From NCBI GenBank assembly GCA_946965045.2, contig OX337232.1:744001-808000 (forward strand): DNA of 64,000 nucleotides. The letters run 5' to 3'. This document shows positions 1,811 to 47,900 of this stretch, piece after piece. Source of the stretch: Epithemia pelagica (lineage: Eukaryota > Protista > Bacillariophyta). Position numbers and translations under genes: made by a program. Numbering within the stretch: the stretch's first letter is position 1; each line of letters starts with the position of its first letter. The notes beneath the pieces were generated by a model, which was not told where the DNA came from, searched no databases, and saw only the letters and a list, made by a program, of their open reading frames with translations.

Positions 1811-1993
1811 TTACAGAAATGCCCCTTCCTCGTCCACATCCTTGTCGTTCTGGTCGATCGTACCGCCTAGAGTTTTGTCGTCATCCTCTCGATCCTCATC
1901 ATCATCCAACCACAAATCCATGGCAGTCTCATATTCCTCATCACCATCGAGACCCAGTTGGGACCAAAAGTCACGACTTGCGTCCTCTGACTC

Positions 1994-2031
<38 letters not shown>

Positions 2032-4645
2032 CGTCGTCGTGTGTATCATTCTTGTCGTTGTTGTCTGACTTGTGAATGCGGCTCCTCATACCTCCTGCTG
2101 AAAAACTGCTTTCAAAACTACTTTGTCGACTTGATTCTTCCTCTCGAGCCTGTTTGGATTGGCCCCATGGGGCGGCTCCTCCTCCTCCTCCATGTGGACG
2201 ACGACGACGACGTCCATCACCACGAGTAGTAGCAGAACTACTCGGAGTCGTCCTCCTCCTCCTTTTGGTCGTCAACGGGGGCAGTGGTTGAACCAAGGCG
2301 GCTTGCAAGGCATCGTACAAGCGACGACAGGGAATCCATTGCAATCCCGAGGGAACCTTCTGTTGTTGTTGATACTGTTGGGAAGCGGGGGGTGTAATGA
2401 CTCGGGAAAATCCCAATCGATGGGCTTCCACCAATCGCTTGTCCAAGGCCGCCACGGGTCGCAATTCTCCCAACAAGCCCACTTCCCCGACCAAGACGGT
2501 ATCGGCACGAACCGGAATTTGCACAAAACTACTCACCAACGCCACAGCTGTGGCCAAATCTGTGGCATGTTGGTTCTTATTATTTGGACGACGACCAGCA
2601 GTGTCTTGTTGTTCGGTAGTCGACACGGCGACATTGACATAAATATCATGATGACGAGACAAGGACCAGGGCAATCCACATCGTTTTTGCAAGACACCCA
2701 ACAAGAGGAGCAATCGTGCGGGGGCCATGCCTTGGACGGTTCGTCGACCCACAGCAGCAGCAGCACCACCACCACCGCCCGTGAGGGGTGTCACCAAGGC
2801 TTGAACTTCGACGGCCATGGCTCGCATTCCTTCCATGACCATGGCAATGGCACAGCCTTCCGCGTCCTCGGATTCGGACCGCGACGATACAAACAAGGTG
2901 GAGGGATCCGAAACGGGTCGCAATCGACCCGTTGTCATTTCATACATGCCGACGGCATCTTGCGATCCAAATCGATTTTTACTGGCTCGTAACAGTCGCA
3001 CTTGATGAATGGTACTACTACTGGTCCCATAGTGTTCCAAATACAAGACGGCATCGACCATGTGTTCGACGGTACGGGGACCCGCAACAGTGCCAGATTT
3101 GGTCACGTGACCGACCAAGACAATGGGAATGCCCGTGGATTTGGCCAAGCGTAACAGCAGGGCGACACATTCCCGAACTTGGGTAATACTACCGGCCGAT
3201 CCCGAGGCCGAATGACATACCATGGTTTGAATGGAATCCAAAATCACCACGGACGGTGGCAAGGCTTGCCACACAAAAGACGACGACGATGACAAGAAGG
3301 ACGGGTCCTCCTCGTCCTGCTCGGATTCCGACCACTGGTTCTTCTTTTCCGTGTTCTTCTTCTTCTTTTTTGACAATTGCTGTTGTTGCTCGTAGTGTTG
3401 CAAGGATTGAATGACCTTGGCACACAGGGTATCGACAACGGTTTCGGACCAGAGCCACAATTCGGACGAGTCCAGTCCCAAGCGATGCGCCCGGGCGGCA
3501 ATTTGTTCGGGACTCTCTTCGCCCGAACAATACCAGACGGGCCCCAGTGGTGGAGGATGGTTGTTGTTAGTAGTAGTAGTGTGGTTGTGGTTTGGTTTTG
3601 AAACAGTAGTCGTGGCGGGTCCCATGCCAATGCCCGGTGTGGGTTGCGAACTGTAGGTCGCAATGGCCCCGGCCATTTGCAACAAGAGGGTTGATTTGCC
3701 CACACCCGGGTCGCCTCCAATCAACACGAGAGATCCCGGTACCAAGCCTCCCCCCAAGACGGTAGTGAATTCGTCATCATGGGGAATGGGAATGCGTTCT
3801 CGACGACGACGAGGACGATTGGAGGATGCTTCTTCTCCCGTGTCGTCGTCGTCGGTTTGTTGGGGATACAAATCGGTAATGCGGACCGGCCTGCCGTGTG
3901 GCATCCAGGACGAAGAAGAAGAAGAAGCATCCGCCAGGACACCATCGAGCCAAGAAGTCGGCAAAGGACCGGCCGCTGGTCCAAACACGGGCCATCCTGC
4001 ACCATTACCACTCGTCATGGTTGTCGCATCCCGTACGACGGCATGTTCTTGAAGGGTATTCCATTGATGACACGTGGGACATTTGCCTCGCCATTGCACA
4101 AATTCACTTCCACAATTGCTGCACAAATAAACGGTAGCAAGGGACGACGAAGATTTGCCCATGGCCTTGCGTTGATTGGGACTCGACCGTCCGCGGCCAT
4201 AGCCAAAGGACGAAATACTACTACTACTACTACTGGCCGAAGTAGAAAGGGGATGGCGAAATTGCGACACGTCCACTTCCGGAGGATCGTCGTCGTCGTC
4301 ATACTCGTCGTTTTCGTCATGAGGAGTGTCTCGGTAGAGACACAAGGTAGTCGTTTTCGTCGAACTACGAGGGGAGCAGAAATTTTTCGCCCATCCAATC
4401 CTCCGAGGAGAAAGGACCATGGTGGTTGGACCAAACGTCGATGGATTCCTCGTCGTCATGGGACGAGGAGGAGACCATGCTGCCGCTTGCACCGCAAACA
4501 CGGTCGGCTGCCACCACCACCACCAACCCAAGAGCGACGACAGTTGCAACGCAAGGACCAGAGATTGAACGACTTCCCCATTTTTGGAATTCTGATTGCT
4601 TCGACCAAAAGTATCCATCCTGGAACAAGGACTTATCAGTGTCAT
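1811..4645 (-). CDS. radA: DNA repair protein RadA/Sms, probably plastid-targeted
   Basis: C4 zinc finger (CSNCG...CPTC), Walker A GGDPGVGKST, Walker B VILDSIQT, GHVTK...AGPRTVEHMVD, KNRFG motif and a Lon-like C-terminal domain (GEVGLLGELRPV). Hydrophobic N-terminal stretch followed by AAAW-SPP resembles a diatom bipartite targeting signal. True start codon uncertain. Confidence 0.93.
4399..4560 (+). repeat. Direct repeat copy A (RadA 5' coding segment); partner at 7384-7542
   Basis: tcctccgaggagaaaggacc...cagttgcaacgcaaggacca recurs at 7384-7542 with a few substitutions and three 3-nt indels. Confidence 0.93.
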
Positions 4646-7383
4646 CCTGACGGCGTTGTCGTTGTGGCTGTGTTATTTGGTGGTTCTCCTGATCTTATTC
4701 CTTGGGGGTATCTTTTCCGACCGTTACTACTCAGCGGTGGGATCCTTTGAATGGTCATAAATCCTCTTTTCCATTGGCGGATACTTTCGATCGAGAGTAC
4801 AAGGCCGCAGTACCCCGAGCGGGGTAGGATTACCCTAGAGTAGCGTTAGCTAGCAACCCTCGAAAGGGGGAAGGCGAACGGCGATGCATACTACAATATA
4901 CTCGCCAGAGAGTGTGCGGCCATGGACTCCCGGACGCAAAATCTGTCGACTCGCATCACAACAAAATCCAAACGGTGCACATTCGGGATTGACGGTTGAC
5001 AGAATACAAGAACTTAAGGAGCGAGACGTAGCTTGTGACAATATAATGTTTCGAGACGGCATTGGGATGGCGGATCAACATGGCGACGGTGACAAAAAGA
5101 AGAAAACGTTTCTTCTCACAGTGGGAACTGATGCCTTTCAAGAACACGACTTGCACAATTGGATGAGGGGGAAACCATACTTGAAGGAACTTGTGGCTGG
5201 AGAGTCGATTGATGAAGCAGAAAACACCATGGACTCTGATCAAAGACAAATATTCGCCGCAATCTCGGATGAAGAGATGCAAGAGAAATTTCGAGAAATG
5301 CTGCAGCGGACGAATCAAAACAGGAGGCTAGCTGAGAAGCTCCATAGCATACAAGCCACAACACGTGAGATCCAAACACAACTGCGTATGCTCTCTGGTC
5401 TTAGCCAAGCAGAGGGCAGCTTGAGCACTTCCACCAGGGAAACTTCTTCGAAGATGCCAAAATTTTCCTGGGAATCACGCTTACCGCTTTCCATTGCCGA
5501 GAACAAGAGTTTATACTCTCCTGTCCTAGAAAACCCCGGGTCTATCGATAGCATCTTTGAAAAAATTACGGAGTTGGGGAACGAAGAAAATTCTCAGGCA
5601 GAAGGTCGACTCCGGAAGCTCGCGGCTCGCCTTGACTCCTATTTGTCGAAATGCCATGTGTTGAAAAAGAGCGACAAGTCCTATGCGGAGAAAATCCGAA
5701 AGTCCATTTCACAGATGGAAGAATATGCTCTTGTGGAGCATGGCAACCAAGGACTGATAAAAAGTGGCAGGGCTGTTATGCCAGGTCCCTACTCACAAGA
5801 AAAAGAGGGTATTCAACCCTTTCTGCAGGCGTTGATGCAGTTGGTTGGTAAATGCCTTGAACCTCCCCAGATGAACATATCAAGTCCTGTGAAATCCTCC
5901 GTTCGGAAAGAGGTCCCTATTCTTCAAACCCAATACCGCTCCAAGCGGTTTATTGATTTTATGCTTTCGAAAGATGGTGTCCTTTTTGACGACATGATAA
6001 AGATTCCTATGGAAACCAAGCCTGGTTGGCGGAAAGGAAGAAATTCACTGTCACTACTCGATGAGGGTAGAGACCAGGTCCTATCTCATTTAGCACAACA
6101 ATTGTTCCTCGGCTTCAACTTTGCTGGAATCGGTGTTCCATGCCATGCAACAGGACTGGTTGCAAACATGGCTGGAGTAAGAGTAATCTATTTACGTTAC
6201 GAGAAAGTGGGTACCGAGGAAGCTAAATTGAGACTTTTCCAGTCCCATCTCCTACCTCTTATGAGTGCTGCGAATTTTGATAAGTGGGTCAAGGATGTCC
6301 CGCAAAAGGGAAGAGATGACTTGAGAAAGGAACTATACGGTGAGAACGGCAACGAGGGTGTTGAAGGTAATTTACCAAAAGGTCTCTGTCTTCTATTCAA
6401 CTTGATGCTACAAAAGAGTGACCATCTGCAAGGGTTCTCCACGAACCTGGAGAGCAAAGAACTTGGTACTCAACTTGGCTCAGGCAGTACGGCTGTAGTT
6501 TTCCGTCGACTGAATTCTGACAAAGAGCCTGACGGTGTAGTAAAAGTATCTCGGTACGGAGTCAAACAAGATATTGAACATGAACTGGAAATTCTTCAAG
6601 AGCTCACTACAACCTCATCAATGAACAAGCACATACCAAGAATCATTGACGAAAAATCGAAATCCATTCGGGTTCAAATTGGATCAGTTTGGGCAGACCT
6701 GCCAGCGATCCGAACGAAACCTGAAGGAACCCCGGCTTCGCATCATTTTTCGCAGGCTCCAGTAGATACTCATGTCCACCTCGCTGCAGTTCTGAATGGA
6801 GTAGGCTGTGCTTTATTCCACATGCATTCGAAAAATATCTTTCATCTTGACGTTTCTCCCAAAAATATTGTGTTTGTTGATCAAGAGGCTGTTCTGATTG
6901 ATTATTCGCTTGCATACAAACGTCCGAGCGGTAAAAACAACGGTCGTGGCAAAAATCTTGTCAAGGGCTTCTTTGGAACACCCAACTACGCGCATCGGGA
7001 AATATTCAATGCTTATCTCAAGGGACAGCAACACTGGAAACCTGCTGAAAAGCATGATGAGGCAGGGCTTGGTTTCGCTTTGGCTTTTTTTGCTGCTGGC
7101 TCTGTGCGCATGTGGTCAGTTGACCACTATCCGATATACAAGAGCAATCCGACACCGAGTGAGGCACAAGAACTGAAAAAAACAATGGACAGGCGCGTTG
7201 AGGCGGCAACAGAAGTGGTTGATAAGAGAGTTGGAACTCATGAGCTCAATGAGCGCATCAAGCGCCTTATTTTGAAGGACAAGGAGTAAAACTGTAACAC
7301 ACTACTCTGGTTACGGCATTTCTTTTGGATTTTAGTACGTCCTTGGTATCTTGTGGGATAGCGGCAATGACCCATCTATAAAC
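4561..7383 (+). mobile_element. Putative inserted nuclease-kinase cassette bounded by duplicated RadA sequence
   Basis: A 2.8-kb unique segment carrying one gene lies exactly between the two direct repeats. No terminal inverted repeats or transposase seen, so mobility is an inference. Confidence 0.4.
4884..7289 (+). CDS. PD-(D/E)xK-like nuclease + Ser/Thr kinase fusion (CR/Crinkler-like architecture), intact 801 aa
   Basis: Kinase motifs LGSGSTAVV, VVKVS, EHELEIL, HLDVSPKN, IDYS, GTPNYAHRE, HDEAG. Upstream nuclease-like motifs EKEGIQPF...FIDF...IPMETK...EGRDQVLSHL are shared with the paralogue at 45.2-47.6 kb. Confidence 0.75.
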   Translation: MHTTIYSPESVRPWTPGRKICRLASQQNPNGAHSGLTVDRIQELKERDVACDNIMFRDGIGMADQHGDGDKKKKTFLLTVGTDAFQEHDLHNWMRGKPYLKELVAGESIDEAENTMDSDQRQIFAAISDEEMQEKFREMLQRTNQNRRLAEKLHSIQATTREIQTQLRMLSGLSQAEGSLSTSTRETSSKMPKFSWESRLPLSIAENKSLYSPVLENPGSIDSIFEKITELGNEENSQAEGRLRKLAARLDSYLSKCHVLKKSDKSYAEKIRKSISQMEEYALVEHGNQGLIKSGRAVMPGPYSQEKEGIQPFLQALMQLVGKCLEPPQMNISSPVKSSVRKEVPILQTQYRSKRFIDFMLSKDGVLFDDMIKIPMETKPGWRKGRNSLSLLDEGRDQVLSHLAQQLFLGFNFAGIGVPCHATGLVANMAGVRVIYLRYEKVGTEEAKLRLFQSHLLPLMSAANFDKWVKDVPQKGRDDLRKELYGENGNEGVEGNLPKGLCLLFNLMLQKSDHLQGFSTNLESKELGTQLGSGSTAVVFRRLNSDKEPDGVVKVSRYGVKQDIEHELEILQELTTTSSMNKHIPRIIDEKSKSIRVQIGSVWADLPAIRTKPEGTPASHHFSQAPVDTHVHLAAVLNGVGCALFHMHSKNIFHLDVSPKNIVFVDQEAVLIDYSLAYKRPSGKNNGRGKNLVKGFFGTPNYAHREIFNAYLKGQQHWKPAEKHDEAGLGFALAFFAAGSVRMWSVDHYPIYKSNPTPSEAQELKKTMDRRVEAATEVVDKRVGTHELNERIKRLILKDKE

Positions 7384-7576
7384 TCCTCCTAGGAGAAAGG
7401 ACCATTGTGGTCTTTGGACCAAACGTCGATGGATTCGTCGTCATGGGACGAGGAGGAGACCATGCCGCCGCTTGCACCGCAAACACGGTCGGCTGCCACC
7501 ACCACCAACACAAGAGCGACGACAGTTGCAACGCAAGGACCACCCAATACTTGAAACGAATTGGCTCCATCGTCAT
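7384..7576 (-). pseudogene. Truncated duplicate of the RadA N-terminus with a signal-peptide-like start
   Basis: MTMEPIRFKYWVVLALQLSSLLCWWWWQPTVFAVQAAAWSPPRPMTT matches the RadA N-terminus and stops after SPRRSL (stop at 7376). Confidence 0.85.
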
Positions 7577-8129
7577 GGAAGGATAGACGCACAGTGGAAC
7601 TGGCTTGTTGGTGAAAAGGGTGCGACCTAATGGAGACTAGCCTCTAGAGCTGACTCACAAGGCCCTACGTCACCTTGCCCAACCAGCCTCACACTTGGAC
7701 TGACGCACTACTTGCATATCTTTTAGGAACGTGGTGACTGTGTGGCGATCGGTCATTTGCCGGCTGCTCGGTAGGCTCGCTGACTGGGTATTACTGGTTG
7801 GGCAGTAAGGGCCATTGTCGAGTTTTCGAGCTCGGTGACATGGACTGACTGCGAAACGTTCGTCGATTTATAAATTCTGGTAGGGCCTTATGCCACGGGC
7901 AATTCTACCACCACACAGGTTGCTGGATTCTCCTTTTCTCTTTCTTTCTGTCTCTCTCTCTTTTTTATTGTTGTTTTTCGAAGAAGTGACAACTCGGTAT
8001 AGAGAAAGGCATTGTTTGCCTCATTCAGTCATTCATTCTCTCTCATGGATTGTATTCTTTCAAAACTGTGTCATTAGTAGCAACCGGGACACTCTCTCTT
8101 CACCCACAACTCATCTTGTATAACCAACC

Positions 8130-44919: not shown

Positions 44920-47900
44920 CTACGGAGCTAACTACGTAGACTATTTCATGTCATTGCGGCCAAATTAATGGCAGTGATTTTACCGCGACTTGGCCAACAA
45001 AACCTACTCCTAGGACACTGTTCCAATTAGTCGATGGTTGCTTAAAAATCGTAAAACGACTAAGACTATCAAGTTACGACTATCAAGTACGAAAGCAATC
45101 GCCAACATGTCATTGTGGGGCCATTCCTTGCTGTCTTTGTCCAATCCTCAGTTCGACGGGCGAAGAGAAACTCAGAAAGATTTATATGTGAGATTTTGGC
45201 TCAACTTACGAGCACCCAAGTAGCAAAGGTTTTCCGTCGATTATGCAGTGTCAAGAATTGATCGGGCCCAGTCCAAGAATACTGTATTGCGCTCCCTGGG
45301 CTTAAACTTCAAGTTCAAGGCTTTCTCGGTTTTCTCGCGACGATCTACAAAGCCCCTATCATGGGGTTTTCTCTCATAGAACCCTTGCCAAGGAATCGGC
45401 ACACCTGTGTTCAAAGCACAAATGGTAAACAACAAAGATGCGGTATCATGGTCCGGCTTGGGAGTCCAAGCCGTCGTGTTGCCCTTTTGGTACACTTCTC
45501 GATGGGCAAAGGCAAGGCTGCCTCGAAAACCCATGGCTTTTTTGCCAGCCCCATAAACCGAGCAACCCCAGTCAATGAGCACGAAATCTTCACTGCTTTG
45601 GTCAAAAATGATATTGCGAGCACAGACATCCAAATGGAAGACATTCCGTTCATGTGCAAAGTTCAACGCAGACTGGACATCTGTGTAGAGACCCTGAAGT
45701 GCTCCGTATGAAGCTTGCCATTCACGAGCGATCCTTTTGGTGAGAACTTGAAGGCAGGGACGTTGATCGTAGTTCCTCGAATCCTGTAGCAGATGCTTCC
45801 AAAGTCTTTAAGAACGGGAATCGACGGTGGGCGGGAGGCAGGGCTATCGTTTAGAGCCCTCAGAGCTCTCAGCTCCCTTTCAATGTGTTGAACCTCCCCA
45901 ACGACGGAAGATTTCACTACGAAGTTATCATGCTTGGTTCCTCCATTTTCCTCCACCTTTCCTTGGTACACAATCCCATGGGTTCCATATCCAATGACAT
46001 CATGAAGCTCTAGCCGTTTTGCCTGGGCAACTTGTGTAGATTGATTGTGCATATGGTAGCTGGCATTTGCTGACGAGTCTCCCGCAAAGAACTGCAACCC
46101 AAGAACTTTGTCGTCCGAGCAAACCAGTCTGAACAGCTCCTGCATCCCGACCGGTACAGACGTATTGTCGGCAGGAAACGGACAAGAAGCATTATCCGCT
46201 AGATAGGTTTGGTCGCATTCTTTTGGGACAAACTTGTTCATGGCAACCTCCGAAACCAAGGGGAGAATTCCAGATCGCTCGACATCCAGGGACACGTCGC
46301 CAGTTTCCATTCCTGACAAGGTCATTGTGATCACCTCCAAATAAACTGGTGTCATGGCCAGAGCAATGGACTTGAGATTACTACCCACTCCACCAAGATT
46401 GAAGGCAACCAGAGTCCTCTTTGCCAGATGACCAATGCATTGCTTCACGGCCTCCATACGCGTCTCTGCGGGGGTCTTGCGCCCGCAGGAAACGTTTTTG
46501 GCTTCCACAGGTATTGACATTTCATGAGCCAGCAGATAAGGAGTGAAGGCCATGAGCGGATTGACTTCATAATCCACGAATTGTTTGGTACCAGATCGAC
46601 CCCTTTTCGGAATCAAGCGCTGGTTGCGCACATCCGATCGAACCGCCGGCTCCAGTGCGTACATGGCACCTTCCGGAGACCCTGCCGCCACCGCTGCTGG
46701 TGCCACCGCGACATGTTGCTGGTTTCTGGCTTTTTCGTCTGCCGTTTTCTCTGCAGTGCCAAGGAGTGACAGGGTTCGAAGCAGACACGCGGGGATTGGC
46801 TGCACCGCTTTCTTCTCCCCTGTCGCGTAGGATGGAACCGTGCACTTGGTTCTCTTGCCTACCCGCTGCGTGTGCCATCCGAGAATGTGACGGACAGTCT
46901 TGCTGATTTGTGCGTCTGTTGGTTCCTCGTTGATAGTTGCCTGTTCCATGGTATCATTCCAAAACGAGGCAAACTGGAGCAAATTTGCCGGTGGGGGATC
47001 TAGTTTCGGAGGGGCTTGAAACGCGCCAAGATGTTTTTGTGCTACCTGCTGCGCAGGTCCAGGACTGTCCATGTAAACACCCCTCATCATGTCCTTATAA
47101 TGATCTTCAGGGCATTCCTCTTGCGATGCAATGACGGTTGATTGGATCTCTGTTTTGTTGGCATACGCAGCCATGGTCTTGAGGTCGTTGTACACTTGTG
47201 AGAATTTCTCCAAGGTAGCGTTTAGTGGGCGCACAATGCCACGATACAGAGCTCTATGCAGAGAATTAAAATCTTCGACATGCAGGTTATTGAAATCATC
47301 ACTTGACCAACCTTGCAATTTCTGGATATTCAAGTTGGGGAATCGAGCTTTGAGACATTGTAGATTATCACTCGAGAGGAACGTCTCCAGACTTTCGCTT
47401 TGTCCTTTTTCCAATTCATTTCCCTCAGCGGCAAATCCAACCTCGTCAAGGTAACGGTCGACTTGCGCAGAAATGGTTTCGAGTTCAGTCATGGTTCCCT
47501 TTGGGTTTTTGGCATGGAAGGTATGCCAGTGGCGAGTCACGGAATCCTCGTCGGCCGAGTCCGGCGAGGGAGTTTCTGGTTCGCCATGGCCGAGAGGATT
47601 GCGTTTGCGCTTCATGCTGTTACGACTCGTCATGGTGGCGGCTCTCGTGTCCCGTTCTTTCACAGCGTGTGTGGTGGAGACCACACCAAGACCAATGTGC
47701 CATGGACCTCCGCGCTTGAGCGTTCTCCTCAAAACCCGAGATGTTTTATGACGAACGGCGGACAGATGGACTGCTCCGATCTCCGATCGAGGAATCAAAC
47801 TGTGGGTTTCCAGATCGTGTTTCATTTCGGACAAAGTTTGGGAAAATCGGTCCACTTGAGCGCGCAGGAATCTCGGTCCTTGTTGTTCCCTTGGTTTCTT

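Follow-up and report, generated by a model that had tools for sequence, protein, structure and literature searches.

A nuclease-kinase gene between two copies of the RadA/Sms leader in the diatom Epithemia pelagica: a possible local rearrangement

Described nuclease-kinase systems and the RadA locus

A classification of the C-terminal modules of Crinkler (CRN) proteins by Zhang et al. in 2016 reportedly includes a kind in which a restriction endonuclease (REase) is joined to a protein kinase, with CRN8 of Phytophthora among its members. Modules of this composition make up about one sixth of the Crinkler (CR) C-termini, and toxicity has been ascribed to their REase part (PMC5289972). A gene of similar architecture, termed K here, is located in the diatom Epithemia pelagica between two direct copies of the beginning of a RadA/Sms gene. 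The analysed stretch of 64,000 nucleotides (the window) corresponds to positions 744001-808000 of contig OX337232.1 (C5:744001-808000) in the 60.5-Mb, 23-contig assembly GCA_946965045.2; coordinates without a prefix are window positions. Comparison of this locus with a degenerate duplicate nearby suggests, with about even confidence, that a local duplicative rearrangement took place at the 5' end of a putatively plastid-targeted RadA/Sms gene, rather than that a mobile cassette arrived there as a discrete unit.

With a REase-fold domain directly before the protein kinase, K resembles in its architecture Crinklers such as CRN8 of Phytophthora. A lead from the ESM Atlas directs to clusters with PF17667 (Pkinase_fungal) and PF20713, and weak matches to PF17667 were obtained for 8 of 11 relatives. 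In contrast, no Crinkler header (Ubl/LxLFLAK region, signal peptide) was detected in amino acids 1-280 of K by a Pfam sequence scan, although a header profile is not known to be contained in the libraries used, and the N-terminal 280 amino acids look like a coiled coil. Furthermore, the host of K is not a pathogen but a free-living diatom. A free-living eukaryote is likewise the host of AACRNL, a header-less Crinkler-like gene that multiplies as a selfish locus (PMC12957317). With the K family it has in common many copies, some associated with local duplications, and apparently also an enzyme of Crinkler descent that has no functional header for delivery. AACRNL, however, carries an ADP-ribosyltransferase and reportedly spreads as a passenger of neighbouring hAT/mariner elements (PMC12957317), whereas K combines a nuclease with a kinase, and according to the repeat finder the block that carries it does not have an inverted repeat running from one end to the other.

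Duplications that arise by template switching during replication or by staggered breaks with inversion are a further counterpart in structure. Host duplications of 0.16-0.9 kb, the lack of element ends, a 26-bp filler and an inverted partial copy (the pseudogene fragment psi described below) are all found here and are typical of such rearrangements. The junction between the RadA leader X and the proximal repeat copy, however, has a microhomology of at most 1 nt by sequence inspection, and a process that is random throughout would not lead one to expect the same pattern at two K-family loci. A nuclease gene within a host gene and a direct duplication of the target on both sides are also found with classical DNA transposons and with homing-endonuclease genes. 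The K block differs from these in that it lacks terminal repeats or other end signatures, encodes neither a transposase nor an integrase, is not flanked by a short target duplication of fixed length and does not occur in near-identical copies; K is neither an intron nor an intein, and it is antisense to its host gene. The shared termini and recent near-identical copies that characterize a discrete mobile cassette were both absent, the best paralogue of K (K') being a pseudogene.

The duplicated RadA leader and its probable older duplicate

The direct repeat consists of a proximal copy, Rp (4399-4560, 162 nt), and a distal copy, Rd (7384-7542, 159 nt), both coding on the minus strand, whose starts are 2985 bp apart. 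A search by BLAST within the window aligned them at 92% identity including gaps (E = 8e-63); substitutions occur at 4 of 156 aligned sites, and three indels, each of 3 nt, also distinguish the copies. Since two of the three indels fall in trinucleotide runs, (TGG)n and GAC-GAC-GAG, slippage alone can account for the multiples of 3 nt, and selection need not be invoked. The 2823 bp between the copies bear the intact 801-aa gene K on the strand opposite to RadA. An earlier note on this DNA had claimed a ~160-bp duplication of the RadA 5' coding region on both sides of such a gene, and this duplication is real, as the repeat finder, MAFFT and BLAST agree on it. A search with positions 4399-4702 found exactly three copies of the repeat in the genome, namely Rp, Rd and an inverted one at C5:739886-740050, which is part of psi. 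With psi as outgroup, one substitution and one additional TGG are unique to Rp, and three substitutions and the loss of GAG are unique to Rd. The duplication does not extend past 7384: the unassigned 26 bp between the tail of K and Rd (7358-7383) have no significant similarity to the RadA sequence following Rp or to psi, and local alignments to either were no better than those of shuffled sequences.

Rp continues in frame into the RadA open reading frame (ORF) and encodes VLALQLSSLLGWWWWW...AAA↓WSPP...MVLSPRR, in which the core of a signal peptide can be read together with a cleavage motif resembling ASAFAP and the beginning of a transit peptide. The hydrophobic core LALQLSSLL(G/C)WWWW and the AAA↓WSPP motif occur in both repeat copies, and cleavage-type sites in orthologues have the form AVA↓WIP and ALA↓WTT, all of this judged from the sequence alone. 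Upstream of Rp lies the leader X (4561-4665, minus strand), whose ATG codons at 4645 and 4618 are both in frame with the repeat and which has a homologue, X', at C5:739666-739748. Rd, in turn, is contained in a 66-codon orphan ORF (7376-7576, minus strand): it is preceded on the minus strand by the ATG at 7576 (MTMEPIRFKYW...), and the frame ends two codons past the repeat with a stop at 7376-7378. The region in front of Rd, termed Z (7543-7612, minus strand), comprises ATG 7576, ATG 7570 and 36 bp upstream and is the probable ancestral start region of RadA; it is 90% identical to its counterpart Z' in psi. Exact protein look-ups for the distal ORF, for the proteins from both RadA starts and for the psi ORF returned no entry in the collection searched.

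The fragment psi is an inverted RadA pseudogene at C5:739816-740378, 8.5 kb away. Its segment C5:739816-740050 matches 7612-7387 (Z and R) at 90%, C5:739886-740099 matches 4560-4345, C5:740101-740286 matches 4279-4088 at 92%, and C5:740284-740378 matches 3875-3766. The distal-type upstream region, a single repeat and the RadA body are hence contained in psi unbroken and in series, with both ATGs of Z' mutated (to AAG and ACG). Compared with RadA, ~212 bp (4087-3876) and ~65 bp (4344-4280) are missing, and psi ends ~880 bp into the gene. The homologue of the leader, X', lies 67 bp upstream of Z', with the stretch Y' in between, and the X frame runs into the repeat at both loci.

The fragment psi is accompanied by K', a pseudogene paralogue located 20 kb upstream of K, with 75% identity to it on the protein level (~80% on the DNA level), which is disrupted by a stop and split ORFs. 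C5:723759-726128 together with an upstream module match 5010-7282 and 4703-4975 of the window. This non-coding module of ~96 bp flanks K' on both sides in direct orientation (C5:722771-722866 and 726601-726697, 75% identical) and occurs once upstream of K (4705-4799). On the way from K' to X' there is first a 378-bp spacer and then a ~12.6-kb nest of young high-copy repeats, many copies of which are 98-100% identical elsewhere. The nest (C5:727077-739670) is made up of a ~9.1-kb retroelement bounded by terminal repeats (727077-736172), a 725-bp repeat of which numerous copies are 98-99% identical, and a 2.8-kb repeat reaching to 739670, which has at least 10 copies 98-100% identical and seems to be internally deleted here. 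With the nest removed, the two loci are collinear in inverted orientation, K'-module-spacer-X'-Y'-Z'-R'-body at the one and K-module-spacer-X-Rp-body at the other. Because of this collinearity, K and RadA were probably arranged head-to-head before the rearrangement.

Substitutions between the two loci fall into two classes. The high class comprises K/K' (17-20%), X/X' (22%; local alignment score of 78 vs a mean of 32 and a maximum of 59 for shuffled sequences) and the far end of psi (20%), and the low class, the middle of psi with ~6% overall, comprises Z (10%), R (3-6%) and the adjacent RadA body (5%). The divergence of the psi centre differs from that of its flanks at p = 3e-7 (Fisher's test). 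This mosaic fits an old segmental duplicate of the adjacent K-RadA pair in which a central tract was later overwritten by gene conversion. The three R copies have pairwise divergences of 2.6%, 3.2% and 5.8%, and since they are almost equidistant the duplication of R and the latest conversion of psi may have been close in time.

The distal-type ATG is supported as the ancestral start of RadA, because psi keeps Z, R and the RadA body contiguous and because orthologues (P0006, P0004 and the one at 3324-5576 of the metagenomic contig L042) have a short n-region straight before the hydrophobic core, which is followed by an Ala↓Trp site. This bears out the proposal of the earlier note that the distal copy represents the original start; psi retains the 70 bp upstream of the distal copy along with repeat and body. 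RadA now probably begins at 4645 or 4618 in X, beside K, and the allelic RadA model of a second assembly (P0001) is a single ORF that begins at the 4618 ATG with MDTFGR. The same note held that RadA takes its start codon and promoter from inside the cassette. The ATG does indeed lie in sequence on the cassette side, but the capture of a promoter from a new arrival need not be assumed, given that X' is found beside psi and K'.

As now built, the RadA/Sms gene extends over 1811-4645 on the minus strand and codes for 944 aa (935 aa from the alternative start at 4618). Pfam matches of the ORF are Zn_ribbon_LapB (PF18073), AAA_25/KaiC (PF13481/PF06745) and Lon_C/ChlI (PF05362/PF13541), and the features of RadA/Sms family members, a Zn ribbon, a RecA-like ATPase and a Lon-like C-terminal domain, are all present. 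Among ~900 homologues, most of them from diatoms, those bearing names are called RadA/Sms, and the organisms named are Nitzschia, Cylindrotheca, Mayamaea, Skeletonema and Thalassiosira. P0002, the closest orthologue from another species, contains at residues ~230-345 two successive units of a hydrophobic core plus (S/A)↓WSP, ~45 residues apart. This double unit sits in a long upstream open frame of the RadA model and hints at a leader duplication in a relative; the presequences of P0002 and of RadA in the window are too diverged for a reliable alignment. When metagenomes were scanned with a RadA profile, nearly all matches were bacterial RadA, and a single diatom contig was usable, L042, in which RadA has a different neighbour. 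On this contig (1809-5576) the gene arranged head-to-head with RadA has a homologue that adjoins the RadA 3' end in E. pelagica (C5:743462-748645), so that either RadA or this neighbour must have been inverted in one of the lineages.

The nuclease-kinase gene K and its family

K (4884-7289, plus strand) is an intact gene whose 801-aa product begins with a coiled-coil-like region, continues with a predicted PD-(D/E)xK nuclease domain (aa 285-520; nt 5736-6443) and has its protein kinase domain at aa ~527-745. Its upstream region (4703-4883, plus strand), including the ~95-bp module at 4705-4799, is common to the K' paralogue and has BLAST matches at C5:726446-726699 (75-78%) and C5:722772-722866 (80%). 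The 3' untranslated tail (7290-7357, plus strand) is also present in L036, a K pseudogene fragment at C5:~1047k, with BLAST homology reaching to 7357.

The kinase domain was recognized by Pfam (Pkinase, PF00069; E = 7.8e-12, 45.6 bits vs a cut-off of 31.7), and 11 relatives have residues G532/G534, K554, E567, H654, D656, N661 and D673 in common without exception, among them the catalytic Lys and Glu, the Asp and Asn of the HxD motif and the DFG-type Asp. A sequence-profile search of the PDB with K retrieved kinases only (CK2, DAPK3 and others at 1e-13 to 1e-15) and no nuclease, and Pfam gave no match for aa 1-520. A word search gave 3 hits, whereas a profile from an alignment of aa 285-520 of seven paralogues found 304 representatives at E <= 1e-3, most of which are 750-1000 aa long, have the domain at ~300-600 and show the same architecture as K. 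An AlphaFold2 (AF2) model of aa 285-520 based on a 10-sequence alignment was unusable (pLDDT 53), and a good model (pLDDT 90.4) required the larger set of relatives in an 80-sequence alignment. The order of its elements (H22-39, E55-62, E71-78, E90-94, H104-127, E136-143) is alpha-beta-beta-beta-alpha-beta. Structural comparison of this model by VIA-align gave BpuSI as best match (Z 11.7; 150 aligned residues, rmsd 3.5), followed by HsdR (Z 9.6), DrdV (Z 9.1) and further proteins of the REase fold (TT1808, DUF820, SgrAI, Can2 and Hjc), and Foldseek against the PDB returned weak rows only. In 80 relatives, four residues of the domain (E306, D358, K379 and Q398) reach a conservation of 90% or more, and E377 is the majority residue at its position and is present in K, which has the motif D358...E377-x-K379 on strands 2 and 3 with the acidic E306 on helix 1. 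On the basis of the modelled REase fold, this motif and the Pkinase match, the product of K is confirmed at the fold and motif level as the nuclease-kinase that the earlier note had described.

A six-frame search of the genome yielded 37 K-family matches. The nearest paralogue on the protein level is K', and all others have at most 41% identity to K. Family members often occur in tandem or inverted duplications, as on contig 17, on contig 11 and in the window. In the latter, an inverted duplication (30874-33297 and 45075-47559) has arms that are 90-97% identical and 12-16 kb apart, each of which holds a K-family kinase paralogue (tblastn matches at 32055-33068 on the plus and 45388-46643 on the minus strand). 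On contig 11, positions 1423933-1474424 comprise seven tandem units with a period of 8202 bp, each with an identical-scoring K-like match in an 801-aa frame.

That other family members might also be flanked by host duplications, as the earlier note had raised, was found to be true of one locus. On contig 8, a K-family gene (797-aa ORF, 2564710-2567100, minus strand) is located between two direct host copies of ~0.9 kb, h1 (2563522-2564407) and h2 (2567425-2568396), which are 83-92% identical and have no other copies in the genome. Included in both are the terminal 48 bp of an 1854-aa ORF and, from a 454-aa ORF convergent with it, the terminal ~386 bp, and therefore both neighbouring genes keep complete 3' ends. 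The host duplications at K-family loci thus measure 160 bp at RadA and ~0.9 kb on contig 8, next to the 96-bp module repeat at K'; none was found around the contig-17 copy L032. Two further candidates were discounted, since the 880-bp repeats on contig 17 are units of a tandem array and a 181-bp repeat pair near the K pseudogene at C5:1047k is 71% identical and not clearly flanking.

Course of the rearrangement and competing explanations

According to the favoured local rearrangement, the ancestral order in the sense of RadA would have been K - module - X - Y - Z(ATG) - R - RadA body, with K and RadA head-to-head. The older inverted and partly gene-converted duplicate K'...X'-Y'-Z'-R'-psiRadA (C5:722771-740378) would have kept this order, whereas at the functional locus the block of K, module and X would later have been placed between two copies of R. 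This could have happened by short-range re-insertion of the block, by a template switch during replication, or by copying of Z-R to a site beyond K and a subsequent in-frame loss of 138 bp comprising Y and Z. The distal copy would have kept the old ATG and the short n-region but, ending at 66 codons, would have become an orphan, and the proximal copy would have been fused in frame to X, so that ATG 4645 or ATG 4618 starts RadA. Since the hydrophobic core, the Ala↓Trp motif and the first residues of the transit peptide are all encoded in R, the bipartite leader of the new protein would still be complete, its n-region having become longer.

This local course is favoured in part because an independent insertion of psi would have had to land, by coincidence, within ~70 bp of the homologous flank of a K paralogue. 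The ends of the block are also not shared among copies: homology to K' breaks off at 4703 on one side and at 7282 on the other, that to L036 at 7357, and X and X' are set off from the module by different spacers. Among the observations that the earlier note had named as speaking against its proposal, that of a syntenic kinase gene was made in part, with K' beside psi, although it is the distal-type ATG, and not 4645 or 4618, that is supported as the ancestral start.

Several observations weigh against a local rearrangement. The order of events is read from small blocks (70-190 bp), and the RadA sequence at the far end of psi is of low complexity. Three new junctions (N-Z, Rd-K tail and X-Rp) are needed to reach the present order from the proposed ancestral one, compared with two for a simple insertion into an empty RadA. 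No trace of Y remains in the window, and the 3' flank of K' has no similarity to the window sequence beyond Z. Finally, the contig-8 family member, likewise flanked by a host duplication, suits an insertion-type process better than a one-off accident.

The strongest competitor, although rather unlikely, is the integration of a K cassette from another locus into RadA by break repair, with a staggered or filled-in target duplication of 160 bp, possibly at a cut made by its own nuclease, and with capture of an ATG and a promoter. Such an insertion would directly produce the pattern of host repeat, K and host repeat, which recurs with h1 and h2 around the K paralogue on contig 8. It would be in line with the former contiguity of Z, R and the RadA body seen in psi and with the apparently intact nuclease predicted for K, and would require just the two novel junctions. 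Yet neither a donor nor a near-identical copy of the K block exists in the 60.5-Mb assembly, and its ends have neither partners in the other copies nor an inverted repeat to link them. The presence of X' beside psi and K' would be an unexplained coincidence, and no evidence links the nuclease to the cut. Moreover, duplications of 160-900 bp are, to our knowledge, far longer than any known transposase footprint. The integration of a foreign cassette by break repair, perhaps at a self-made cut, as the earlier note had envisaged, is therefore not supported and is less likely than a local rearrangement, given the missing terminal repeats, the missing close copies and the collinearity of X' and K'.

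A lower probability still is assigned to concerted evolution, in which the structure of two R copies enclosing K would be as old as the K/K' split (~20%), the R copies would have been homogenized by gene conversion, and psi would have been copied from this structure, with Z' later converted from the distal copy. The near-equidistance of the three R copies (2.6%, 3.2% and 5.8%) would suit ongoing exchange, and the mosaic divergence of psi demands conversion under any model. A conversion tract would, however, have to switch template between the R copies and end in non-homologous sequence, and the 67-bp Y' would be left unexplained. The excess of unique changes in the distal copy (three substitutions vs one in the proximal copy) is what would be expected of a relaxed relic and not of a homogenized pair, the counts being very small.

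A more far-reaching proposal, and an improbable one, is that REase-kinase genes act as agents of their own duplicative insertion: the nuclease would make breaks at or close to a target, and the gene with a variable 5' flank would be copied in along with a host duplication of 0.16-0.9 kb that preserves the ends of neighbouring genes. As a minority reading, an insertion-type and possibly nuclease-linked process is kept alive by the recurrence of flanking repeats on contig 8 and of the module at K'.

It is very doubtful that the locus represents a single gene still transcribed from the distal ATG, with K nested in an intron of ~3 kb that is removed along with one repeat copy, or that the two repeat copies serve as alternative first exons. 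Many GT/AG pairs would formally be in frame between the distal ORF and the X/Rp region, and the distal ORF is still open over 66 codons, but no candidate donor is near a strong consensus, no pair removes exactly one repeat copy, and a stop follows two codons past Rd. The independent gene model of the RadA allele is a single ORF from the 4618 ATG, and introns of diatoms are typically short.

It is unlikely in the extreme that the duplication is false, the product of a mis-join or of collapsed haplotypes, even though assembling a diploid genome may create such repeats where it switches between haplotypes. The copies differ at 4 sites and by three indels and do not share their flanks, and an identical K protein is encoded on a further contig. 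The X-Rp junction is reproduced by a second public assembly or haplotype with RadA and K alleles 1-2% different (RadA P0001 98-99% identical, K allele P0124 identical at 793 of 801 residues), both of which are encoded on a contig of 916,022 bp in length.

Under the favoured local rearrangement, the locus offers a clean natural example of an organelle-targeted gene that came through a rearrangement inside its own leader. Since the 160-bp repeat carries the entire signal-peptide core and the cleavage motif, start codon and n-region could apparently be changed without losing the address of the protein. The history of this change can be rebuilt where sister genomes are missing because the nearby pseudogene copy psi serves as an internal "empty site". 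If REase-kinase genes were indeed agents of duplicative insertion, this would be an undescribed, terminus-less mode of selfish gene spread, which in this case would have remodelled the leader of a DNA-repair gene. The finding of two members of a Crinkler-type nuclease-kinase family that are flanked by long host duplications raises the question of whether such genes promote their own local duplication, which, if true, would bear on the expansion of effector-like families in free-living algae.

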